NCBI GenBank assembly: GCA_030704615.1 | Contig: CM060731.1 | Span: 34,534,001 to 34,598,000 of the forward strand | DNA from: Takakia lepidozioides | Taxonomy: Eukaryota; Plantae; Bryophyta | Reading direction: 5' to 3' | DNA length: 64,000 nucleotides | Shown: positions 53,685 to 57,830 of the stretch, piece after piece | Layout: the number at the start of each line of letters is the position of its first letter | Position numbering within the stretch: position 1 is the stretch's first letter | Made by a program: the position numbers and the translations under genes | Notes under the pieces: generated by a model | What the model saw: the letters and a program-made list of their open reading frames with translations, nothing else | Told to the model about the DNA's origin: nothing | Database searches by the model: none

Positions 53685-53847
53685 CAACCGGGTCGATTTA
53701 TTGTTGGCATCTTGCCCCAACAACTTGAGGAGCGTCCATCCCAATTCGGCAAAGCCAAGTCCCCCCAACCGGGTCGATTTATTGTTGGCATCTTGCCCCA
53801 ACAACTTGAGGAGCGTCCATCCCAATTCAGCAAAGCCAAGTCCCCCC
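53685..53847. repeat. Near-perfect tandem duplication 2 x 81 bp just downstream of the decarboxylase stop codon
   Basis: CAACCGGGTCGATTTATTGTTGGCATC...GCCAAGTCCCCC at 53685 and 53766, with one mismatch. Confidence 0.95.
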
Positions 53848-53928
53848 ACAGCTCACAGGTGAACGACATACCACAACCTCCAAAATGACCTAAAAGTGAC
53901 CTCCACTGCAATGGAACTGCCGCAATCA

Positions 53929-55284
53929 CTAGTGTCCAGTGGTAGTTTTATGAGTTCTGGTGTATACTGGGAAGACATAGGTGACAAAGCAAAGGGATGC
54001 TAACACAGAGCCAAAGCTCTTGTCGATTTCACCCTCCTGAATTATGTAATCCTCCTCAAAGATTTCATAGTCCTTGGAGTCAAAGCGCCTCTCAAAAATT
54101 CCAGTCAAATCCTTTCTCAGAATGTTTCTGGCAGTATCCTCACTCCCATGCCCAGAGTATTCCGCAGCATATCCACCAATGTGGAACTTGTCTTTCTTCT
54201 TCCGGATCTAGCACCCCAGTCAACAAGCAGCCTCCCAGATTCATGTTCTGTTGATGTTACGCAGTATCATCCCCAACAGGATCAAGCAACTGTGTGATTG
54301 TCTAGCCAAGTGACCACTGATCCCTAGTGCAAAGACAAGCTGCATCATTAGCAGAGACTTTGATTAAATCTAAGACATTCTACAGTGCAGAGTTGGCAGT
54401 GCAAGGTCAAAAGACAAGCACCTGCATGCGGCCCACACCAGCAGTAATGCGGTCGCCCTTCACACCATGCATGGTAGCCATTATGGATTCCATGACAGCA
54501 CCATGTCTCAGAAATGGCTTCGCCTCCTCCAGTGTAAGTGCTTCGGACTCTGGTGGTATCACTGAACTGTACTTTACAATGTTCAGATCTTGGATACCTG
54601 ATTGAGAGAGAAACATGTTAATCTCTCAGTTCTTGCATAAAAGCTGCAGAAAAAGTTCAAACATAGAATCAGGAGTACTGCCTCCAATTACTTGAATGGC
54701 CTTCGCAGCACAGTCACTTAATGTACATTGCAGAGGGGGTGTAGTGTGGAAGACATACCCGCATCCTCTAAAGCCAGGTCGTAGGAACCAGTCTCCCATG
54801 GGTCGGACCCTTCGCCCTGGTCAGTCTCCCCATAGCCCTTTACCATGAAATAGTGCTTGGGGATGCGAGTCCCCAACAGAGTACCGTAGCCACCCAACAC
54901 GAGGGGATTCTGCTGCAGATGAAGAATGTCATCGGTATCGTTTTGGTTAGCATATTGTTTGAGGCCGACCTTCTGGGGCAGCTTGGGCACACCTCCATTT
55001 GGGTGGTGCGTAGTGTGTGATCTGGCTATTTTGGTTTCTTTTGTACGCGCGCACCGCAACGCAAGTCTATTATCACTAGACTCCCGGCAAATATTATTTG
55101 GTGCAGCATTGAACTGATCAACTAGTTTGGTAAACCCTGCTACACGCCCGGTAAAGGAAAGACCTTTGGTGGGCCTGCCATTTTCAAACTTTTGAGCTCT
55201 GCAATTCCCCGACGTGATGCATGCACTGGCGGGTGTATGAGATCCTAGCCTGTGGGTCAGTCCTGTTGCCTGCGTTGCTTCCAT
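53929..55284 (-). CDS. pdaD: Pyruvoyl-dependent arginine decarboxylase proenzyme (PvlArgDC; AaxB/PdaD-like) with plastid-transit-like leader; exons 55284-54759, 54597-54422, 54207-53929; 326 aa
   Basis: Spliced core GTRIPKHYFMVKGYGETDQG...PWETGSYDLALEDAGIQDLNIVKYSSVIPP...FLRHGAVMESIMA...ITAGVGRMQIRKKKDKFHIGGYAAEYSG...FGSVLASLCFVTY; collinear with the recalled AaxB pattern GTRYP...GESDDG...PFETFCYDSAL..AKIENFNIVPYTSVLP...HGAVLEVIMA...IGGWAAEY. Exon lengths 526+176+279 = 981 nt, in frame. Confidence 0.88.
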
Positions 55285-55849
55285 ATCTCCGCACCAAAAA
55301 GACGGGGGGAGAGTTGATCAACGAAATGATCAAAAACTCCAACAGTTGCAAGCCTTCCACCAACGCGACAAATTACAAGTGCCTGGAATGAAGGACCGTG
55401 CTTTGAACACCAGGTGGCTGGCTTGGATGCAGTTATGCCTGACGGGTGTCAAGCCAAGATCTGCGTTGTGGGCTTGTTACTTGTGAGATTGCCATGTGCC
55501 AAATTATGCTTCGAATCTGCTCTGCTCCATGCAGGTTTTACTTTCACAACCTGAAGGTAACCAGAACTATGTACTTCTCACTGTATGATTTTACAAGTCA
55601 ACATGTAATGTTAGCCAATGTTGAATTATGTGCTTGGTAAGTACTTTTAGTGTTAAGTTAAACATCTGTAAAATGAGATTGTAATGAAGACAATGGCATC
55701 ATCATTTGAGAGCAGCAGATATGCATTATCCGATATGTAACAACAGCCTTCAATGTTCAAGGCTTTAAATATACATAACATGAGTTGACGAAAGATGCCC
55801 TGACCAATTACAAACTAAACTGGCTTCTTTTTCTTTTTCTTTGCAGACA

Positions 55850-57830
55850 AAGCTCCCAAGCCGAGTGACTTCCACCGGGTTTTAGCAATGCCTTGACAAT
55901 CTCTGCCAAGGCCCTTGCCTTCCACAAAACCCATCTTCGCCATCATGCGCGATCCAAAACGGCCTCAAACGTCCCGAAAGCAGCAGGGCCCACTGGCATC
56001 ACCTGCATTTGGTGTGAACTTGCAGCCCCACTCCTTGAGCTTTCCCCTCTTTCAGTCACGCTGGAAGCTAAGTTACTCTCAAGGCCTAGGCCTGCAGTCC
56101 CTCCCAACACAGCTGAGGAGCTATTTTCCTCTTCTGCCCCAACGATTCCACTTGAAACAAAAGACATCAGATTACTCGCATACTTTACCTTCCCTTGGCT
56201 GCTGGTAACACGGCCCTTGTCAGCACTTTTCGGTTCACGACCTGCATAGGAAAGGATAGCAAATGAGAAAAGCGAAAGAAAAGCAAAAAGCGGGCTTTTT
56301 CAAAAGCTCTTGCCAATCCAAGCCTCATCTCAAAAGCTCAACTGCCTCTTCATGAGAAGGTTGATCACCTGATGGCATTCTCCTGGACTTCAGCTGTGGC
56401 AAGGATCCATGAGTTGGACTGGACTTATGTTTACGCCCTCCGCGCTTATGTGAAGTTGCCTGCAAGCTTTGACAGGGTTGCAGTGTGACATGGCTGACGT
56501 TTTTTGCCATAGGATGCTCTTCACCTGTTACGAACTTGCTGATAGGAATCGACCGGGCAGCTCTCCCCACATGTTGCCCTGGGACCTACACAAAGAGAGC
56601 ATGGATTACAGCCTACCATCTGTGCTACCTCAAAACCGTAAACCACGAGTCTTCAGGTTGACAGAGATCAATGTCAGTACCGGCAGGTAATAGAGACTCA
56701 AGCTTAAATTAGTACACATCTGTAAAGCGGCTTGAAAACTTGCTAGGATCTCAAGTGCGTGCAGTTGCTACCCCAACTTTCTGTGGAGACCTGGCCGCTC
56801 CTATGTAGCCGTGTCTAGGATTGAATAATTTGCCAAGGCTGGTCAGGGACACTTGTGGATTCCCCAACTTAAAAGTCTTGCAGGCTATTATTGTTGTTTC
56901 GAGCTGGGAATCTCACCTGTGCCCGGTCATAGTTTTGATTCATGGGCTCAACAGCATAGATGCCCGAATGCTTCAACACCAATGCGTCCAGCCTCTGTTT
57001 CCCAGGAATCACTCCATCCAGGTGAGTTCGGCCCAGCCAGTACATTGAGTCATGGCATGAGTGGCGACTGGACATATTTACTTCTCAACCGAATGCAATG
57101 CACATAATGTCACAAAATTCTGAATATGTCGGTCTTGAATGAGGATGCGACTGGTCACGTAGAAGGTCTTTACCGCATTAATGTCGGCAAGGTCAAAGCC
57201 AAGCCGTAGCGCTTGTTCGTTCCGCTGCTGTTTCTTTTGCCCTGCATGACTCCACCTTGCTGTGAGTACCTGCATGATCCATCGACATCTCATGTGCAGA
57301 GCAATTCCTTAGACTCTGATCAGATCTACTAGCTGGCCTGCTTAAGCTCAAGTCAAGTGCAAACAAGTTGTGGATTGAAAGATCTGAGCCAAGGTTTGCA
57401 CACAATCTTAGTGTGCACCTCAATTGTCGTAAATAGGTACTATTGCATAAGATCATGCCTAGTACGTGTACAACATGATTAACTCTGGGGACCAGGTTTT
57501 CAGAAGTGCAGTGAAGCTCAGTCCACAGCGCGCTCTGGAGTTGAATAATCTGCGAAAAATCTGCACCGAAAATCCATTTGAGCGGACAACACTGCATTTT
57601 TCAGTCATTGGACTGCAAAACAAAAAGGAAAAGGCAGTGAACCTTGGAGCTCTGCAACGTACCAGGCATGGTTTTGGAAATTTTCTGGGTCTTGCTGGTA
57701 CTGATGGGCCCTTTCTTGGAATATGTCTGTGACCCCTTGCTTGCTATTTTTCTTCTATTTGCTGCAGCAGGCGTCTTTGGACTCGGGCCTGCGTGTTTTG
57801 CATGTCCGAGGTCATAATGGTTACAACGGC
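55850..57830 (-). pseudogene. Probable decayed multi-exon gene of unknown family
   Basis: Protein-like segments bounded by splice signals (acceptors ~57269, ~56584, ~56241; donor ~56916 joining DRAQ|VPGQHVG in frame), interrupted by a frame change near 57078 and stops at 56325 and 55943. Confidence 0.35.

Follow-up and report, generated by a model that had tools for sequence, protein, structure and literature searches.

The window, the 64,000-nucleotide stretch of Takakia lepidozioides DNA analysed here, carries on its minus strand a nuclear, expressed and spliced plant gene for a 326 aa member of the pyruvoyl-dependent arginine decarboxylase family (PvlArgDC; Pfam PF01862). The best explanation as a whole, to which a probability of roughly 0.6 is given, is that the product is a pyruvoyl-dependent arginine decarboxylase proenzyme with plastid-type import, which would furnish a parallel supply of agmatine and would descend from a single ancient acquisition. 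The enzyme class and its chemistry are well known in microbes and homologues are already labelled automatically in databases; what is apparently undescribed is a conserved green-plant PF01862 variant with introns and an N-terminal extension. Full-text literature gave no description of a PF01862 enzyme in plants or algae, passing mention in older subscription papers being possible. To our knowledge, polyamine reviews treat the PLP-dependent arginine decarboxylase (ADC) as the sole plant enzyme converting arginine to agmatine; the gene described here suggests a second way into polyamine synthesis that has been overlooked.

The coding sequence is assembled from exons 55284-54759, 54597-54422 and 54207-53929 (526, 176 and 279 nt, stop included), giving 981 nt and 326 aa with no internal stop in any exon; both introns are bounded by GT..AG and contain stops in all three frames. 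The original prediction of a clean three-exon model agrees at every checked coordinate, including the Ser-Ser codons at 54568-54563. The features are, in the direction of transcription:

55285..55365, minus strand: transcribed 5' UTR of at least 81 nt, with no upstream ATG
54759..55284, minus strand: coding part of exon 1, aa 1-175 plus one base; an N-terminal extension of about 130 aa, followed by the first part of the PvlArgDC beta chain, which contains Tyr168/Asp169 (Phe34/Asp35 of M. jannaschii)
54985..55284, minus strand: candidate organellar transit peptide of about 100 codons; D+E 5-6%, Ser/Thr/Ala 30-32%, no hydrophobic segment
54598..54758, minus strand: intron 1, 161 nt, GT..AG, phase 1, shared in position with Sphagnum and Adiantum
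54422..54597, minus strand: exon 2, aa 176-234, holding Asn181 and the predicted Ser186-Ser187 self-cleavage site
54563..54568, minus strand: codons of Ser186-Ser187, Ser187 aligning to the pyruvoyl-forming Ser53 of M. jannaschii
54208..54421, minus strand: intron 2, 214 nt, GT..AG, phase 0, shared in position with Sphagnum, Adiantum and plant contig L123
53929..54207, minus strand: exon 3, aa 235-326 plus stop, with the catalytic Glu250 (M. jannaschii Glu109) and the remainder of the alpha chain
53799..53928, minus strand: transcribed 3' UTR, entering an 81-bp tandem duplication at 53685-53848; the contig continues for a further 61 nt past its aligned part

Transcriptome contigs from two public runs of two studies (X1 and X2) skip exactly 214 and 161 nt with 0 mismatches and span 55365 to about 53800; about 67% of the words of the locus are present in X1 and X2. 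These runs are only guessed to be RNA, and the contigs are taken as spliced transcripts because the introns are removed precisely and with perfect identity, which supplies the RNA-seq support at both junctions that had been proposed as a check. In an orthologous contig of another species the spliced length between two conserved anchors is identical (310 letters). The tandem duplication overlapped by the 3' UTR lies just downstream of the stop and comprises two 81-bp copies that are 98% alike. Also downstream, and convergent with the decarboxylase gene, is a multi-exon short-chain dehydrogenase gene (PF00106; 49850-52900, plus strand), which we take to resemble chlorophyll b reductase NOL/NYC1. 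Pieces of the window at 55791-57754 are matched in X1/X2 only by transcripts of a diverged paralogue, which carry many substitutions and small indels, and neither run yielded a contig identical to the copy in the window.

The window sequence was searched exon by exon, and the trees and fold model were built from database homologues. The exons match positions 1-28 (E 0.0018), 30-86 (E 1.2e-13) and 93-161 (E 3e-4) of the PF01862 model; these matches are colinear and cover all 161 positions, as expected from the predicted family assignment. Exon 2 alone scores 51.7 bits against a curated cut-off of 22.7, and full-length orthologues reach 98-117 bits. PF01862 is the sole Pfam family matched, no exon matching the PLP-binding alanine-racemase fold (PF02784/PF00278). 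Against the archaeal PdaD equivalogs TIGR00286 and PRK12398, exon 2 as a single-exon query gives 27 and 24 bits (cut-offs 107 and 207), and exons 1 and 3, queried singly, match neither. Alignment to the solved M. jannaschii enzyme places Asp35, Asn47, Ser52, Ser53 and Glu109 at Asp169, Asn181, Ser186, Ser187 and Glu250, so that the key positions, previously claimed to be intact, are confirmed by both numbering and alignment. Asp35 of the M. jannaschii enzyme is reportedly the residue that binds the guanidinium. The equivalents of Asn47, Ser53 and Glu109 are found in 22/22 green rows and that of Asp35 in 21/22, Adiantum having Glu. The structure of a close homologue, P0004 (identity 81% to exon 2 and 76% to exon 3), was modelled by AlphaFold with a mean pLDDT of 74; its PDB matches are PvlArgDC structures only, and Foldseek aligns it to M. 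jannaschii PvlArgDC with E 1.4e-11 and a TM of 0.78 by target at 27-28% identity. By profile, fold (through the P0004 model) and residues, the protein is a genuine PF01862 member. Furthermore, comparison with Sphagnum gives a pN of 0.10 and a saturated pS of 0.75, which indicates long purifying selection.

If it behaves like its counterparts in M. jannaschii and Chlamydia, the proenzyme would fold as an alpha-beta-beta-alpha sandwich and cleave itself between Ser186 and Ser187, leaving a 140 aa alpha chain with an N-terminal pyruvoyl group. This group would form a Schiff base with L-arginine, the guanidinium being held by Asp169 and Glu250 serving as general acid; CO2 and agmatine would be released without PLP. 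Arginine is the most likely substrate because both assayed family enzymes use it and the Asp is kept; the two assayed enzymes named in the accessible portions of the sources, that of M. jannaschii and AaxB of Chlamydia, both act on arginine (PMC2720952; PMC9992855). The literature yielded no assay for the sub-branch to which the green protein belongs, which counts against the best explanation, as does the low identity to the solved enzyme. Agmatine may then pass through the AIH/NCPAH route to putrescine, in parallel to the PLP-dependent ADC. Marchantia also has a canonical ADC, MpADC (bioRxiv 10.64898/2026.04.30.721942), and since that enzyme is kept there the pyruvoyl-type gene would be a parallel route in this plant; this coexistence favours the earlier claim of a second route alongside canonical ADC.

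The genomic surroundings of prokaryotic and viral relatives bear on the same question. In an Ignavibacteriae locus a close relative stands beside an APC amino-acid permease and a pyruvoyl histidine decarboxylase, in L021 another stands beside an APC permease and a deoxyhypusine-synthase (DHS) homologue, and in the viral contig L042 a third is near a DHS homologue. Bacterial DHS homologues (SpeY) use agmatine (PMC13625781), and these permease and DHS-like neighbours fit agmatine production; most prokaryotic loci have no conserved polyamine neighbour. Bacterial PvlArgDC genes at L032:6001-8842 and L004:479-2193 are each paired with a pyruvoyl histidine decarboxylase gene (PF02329), the two being separated in L032 by an APC permease gene; this places two pyruvoyl decarboxylases in one apparent operon.

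The N-terminal extension is poor in acidic residues: aa 1-60 of the window protein contain 5% D+E and 32% S+T+A, although the protein begins with Met-Glu, which is atypical of transit peptides. By composition, no secretory signal or hydrophobic stretch is seen in its N-terminus. The N-termini of 20 streptophyte homologues average 5% D+E and 34% S+T+A, with Ala at position 2 in 12 of the 20; those of 10 chlorophyte-side homologues are charged (13% D+E), and the Selaginella gene models are without the extension. These compositions fit an organellar transit peptide acquired in streptophytes, and the acid-poor extension would probably direct import into an organelle, most likely the plastid. The plastid is the site of arginine synthesis and of canonical ADC action.

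Named orthologues are found in the bryophytes Sphagnum compactum, Marchantia polymorpha, Riccia fluitans and Calypogeia fissa, the lycophyte Selaginella moellendorffii, the ferns Adiantum nelumboides and Pteridium aquilinum, the streptophyte algae Spirogloea muscicola and Chlorokybus, and the green algae Myrmecia bisecta, Coccomyxa and Botryococcus, trebouxiophytes being among the holders; of the named sequences, Sphagnum matches each of the three exons best. The gene had been presented as a domesticated one of prokaryotic derivation; its domestication is not specific to one lineage, as it belongs to a family common to green plants; the accompanying suspicion that unstudied homologues might already be annotated in algae or bryophytes was correct, as UniRef/NCBI entries from Riccia, Marchantia, Selaginella, Coccomyxa and Myrmecia are labelled automatically as arginine decarboxylase. 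Sphagnum and Adiantum have both introns at exactly these positions; in L123 intron 1 apparently recurs along with intron 2. Coccomyxa has six introns in differing positions, and the core of the Marchantia gene has none. No synteny was seen between the window and the Sphagnum, Marchantia, Adiantum or Coccomyxa loci. Only 67 clusters at E up to 1e-30 came out of an exhaustive profile search of 1.84 billion representatives, and every full-length green-type cluster among them was algal, bryophyte, lycophyte or fern. Seed plants, Physcomitrium, Ceratodon and Chlamydomonas are absent among the named matches, and a fern-seeded word search toward seed plants, of low sensitivity such that divergent copies are missed, gave 6 matches. 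Absence from seed plants is likely rather than certain, since the representatives hide members and many rows are without names.

In LG+C20+F+G4 trees, for which supports are SH-aLRT values only and the outgroup is unnamed, algae and land plants, ferns included, form one clade (100 and 98), with land plants together within it (95 and 91). In the first tree Adiantum fell outside the green clade beside a long branch; once Pteridium was added, both ferns grouped with land plants. The green clade is set among sequences of Ignavibacteriae, Desulfarculaceae, Omnitrophota, Acidobacteriota, Actinomycetes and Methanothrix, the nearest prokaryotic sequences, which come from Methanothrix and from bacteria that are uncultured or anaerobic, having 42-57% identity to a plant query; no supported prokaryotic sister emerged in these trees. 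This nesting among diverse prokaryotes bears out the proposed prokaryotic-type origin, and from it we infer, with support, a prokaryote-to-plant direction of transfer. Because the green sequences form one clade and moss and fern have both intron positions in common, an origin close to the root of green plants is probable for the gene. The simplest reading is that it was acquired once from a prokaryote, at about the base of Viridiplantae, and later lost in a patchy manner; the two introns would have been gained before the bryophyte/vascular plant split, and seed plants and several model lineages would apparently have lost the gene.

The original prediction also placed the protein nearer to chlamydial AaxB than to archaeal PdaD. 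The broad part of this stands, as AaxB-type proteins fall in the same larger PF01862 branch as the green clade; a sister relationship to the core group does not, as AU tests (LG+F+G4) reject the green clade with the core AaxB-type group (p=0.0002), that group being assigned by motifs (in part from primers in PMC2720952) in a set from which named Chlamydia sequences are absent. Grouping with the wider AaxB-like clade is not rejected (p=0.097). A chlamydial donor finds no support: in a GTDB scan none of 27 loci was chlamydial, the scan patterns being such that divergent AaxB would be missed. A giant-virus donor was set aside, the large GVMAG group lying far from the green clade; the viral-contig protein P0327 groups with green plants under LG+F+G4 and not under the mixture model.

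Compared with M. jannaschii PdaD (MJ0316; PDB 1N2M, 1MT1, 2QQC, 2QQD), the plant-type protein has the same fold and Pfam family, equivalents of Asp35, Asn47, Ser52-Ser53 and Glu109, and the EYxG motif after the catalytic Glu; it differs by an extra loop before the Asp, identity of only ~27-28%, and a eukaryotic, nuclear gene with two introns and a 130 aa N-terminal extension. With AaxB of the chlamydial AaxABC exchange system it has in common the GTR.P, HGAV.E.IMA and IGG.AAEY pattern and cleavage before Ser at the equivalent site (PMC2720952); however, the AaxB-type group is a separate long-branched clade with EYVE(F/V)F in place of the EYxGH of the plant protein, and no porin (AaxA) or antiporter (AaxC) partner is linked in plants, the downstream neighbour in the window being the short-chain dehydrogenase gene and the neighbours in the other plant loci being unrelated. 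Strictly taken, the window protein is not an orthologue of AaxB. The closest non-plant relatives are unassayed PF01862 proteins of Ignavibacteriae, Desulfarculaceae (Dethiosulfatarculus), Omnitrophota, Methanothrix and aquatic viral contigs, which have the PWETGSYD motif in common with plants, are intronless, and in several cases have signal-peptide-like N-termini. The canonical plant ADC of the SpeA type, present in seed plants, is presumed to catalyse the same reaction but is unrelated in fold (alanine racemase) and cofactor (PLP). Pyruvoyl arginine chemistry also occurs elsewhere in eukaryotes: Ao-ADC1 of Aspergillus oryzae is a PSD-derived pyruvoyl ADC of PF02666 (PMC12904898), and the intron-containing SpeDA homologues of Nannochloropsis and Tribonema are pyruvoyl ADCs of AdoMetDC class 1b (PMC10407285); neither is of PF01862 or from green plants.

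It is conceivable, if unlikely, that the enzyme serves acid-activated arginine catabolism or pH control under acid or anoxia, as AaxB/AaxC and AdiA/AdiC do, rather than polyamine supply. Among named bacterial homologues the nearest, from Ignavibacteriae, forms a gene run with an APC permease and a histidine decarboxylase, an arrangement typical of acid-resistance systems; the permease pairing occurs a second time in L021, and bryophytes of peat or wetland (Sphagnum, Calypogeia; as gathered from named matches) are the source of many homologues. The pH optimum of AaxB, near 3.4 (PMC2720952), points the same way and counts against the best explanation, because it is far from stromal pH. Yet no antiporter gene is linked in the plant loci, and the transit-like extension, with no secretory signal, would lead to a neutral or alkaline compartment. 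Slightly less probable again is an active pyruvoyl decarboxylase with another substrate (lysine, ornithine, histidine, homoarginine or a modified arginine) or with promiscuous activity. Such shifts have precedent, SpeD homologues having turned repeatedly into ADC or ODC (PMC10407285) and PSD into the Aspergillus ADC (PMC12904898); that the gene has been kept alongside canonical ADC for hundreds of millions of years hints at a role of its own, and the Glu at the Asp35 position in Adiantum and the loop before the Asp, which is particular to the sub-branch of the green protein, also speak for another substrate. The use of arginine by the assayed members named in the accessible text, the Asp35 equivalent in all but one green row, and the agmatine-using DHS homologues that adjoin close relatives weigh against a change of substrate.

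A conserved arginine-binding sensor or regulator that neither cleaves nor catalyses is very improbable, since retention of the cleavage and catalytic residues across green algae and land plants would be hard to explain without catalysis; still, cleavage is not provable by sequence alone, and AaxB of C. trachomatis D/UW-3, which looks intact and is transcribed, is inactive through one missense change (PMC2720952). Contamination, mis-assembly or recent bacterial insertion has a negligible chance of being correct, being excluded by introns that are spliced in transcripts and common to moss and fern, by GC like that of the surroundings, by intron-rich plant neighbours, and by orthologues across green plants.

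A PF01862 enzyme that is conserved and expressed across algae, bryophytes, lycophytes and ferns would change the map of plant polyamine metabolism, and an unrecognised second ADC in seedless plants would come as a surprise to workers on polyamines. A microalgal review describes green algae that have AIH and NCPAH but no ADC and proposes other substitutes (PMC6356823); the enzyme may fill this missing step. Work on Marchantia and other seedless models that relies on ADC assays or inhibitors could also be confounded by it, and the gene adds a case of ancient transfer from prokaryote to plant with a later, apparent loss in seed plants. The fuller account, of an ancestral, PLP-independent second ADC of prokaryotic origin that was retargeted to the plastid in streptophytes, is maybe the missing algal enzyme, and disappeared when seed plants arose, is offered tentatively, at somewhat under even odds. 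On that account it would be a fourth, unrecognised eukaryotic type of ADC and a branch of nitrogen and polyamine metabolism peculiar to seedless plants. The proposal is directly testable, as Marchantia polymorpha carries the gene.

The PF01862 family extends well beyond these plants. At least 80 viral contigs (L046-L121; IMG/VR, many GVMAG), many of them giant-virus MAGs, contain relatives, and the Asp, Asn/Ser and Glu motifs are kept in 74 of 77 full viral domains; the accessible part of a paper on polyamines in the virosphere (PMC9992855) reports only SpeD-derived pyruvoyl ADCs. Viral PvlArgDCs with 48-50% identity to the Sphagnum protein are encoded at L042:2971-6488 and in L040/L043 (P0327), with a SpeY-like DHS gene lying about 2 kb downstream in L042. 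Hydrophobic, signal-peptide-like starts are seen in many prokaryotic homologues, Methanothrix ones among them (P0126, P0056, P0145, P0029, P0197), which suggests exported pyruvoyl decarboxylases. The fern copies are long-branched, and that of Adiantum nelumboides (P0185; L030:5001-6298) also has a C-terminal extension; its Glu for Asp35 is a possible substrate shift. P0213, P0214, P0217 and P0223, PF01862 proteins of 260-320 aa with N-terminal extensions encoded on short JGI contigs, form a separate group that is possibly an independent eukaryotic lineage.
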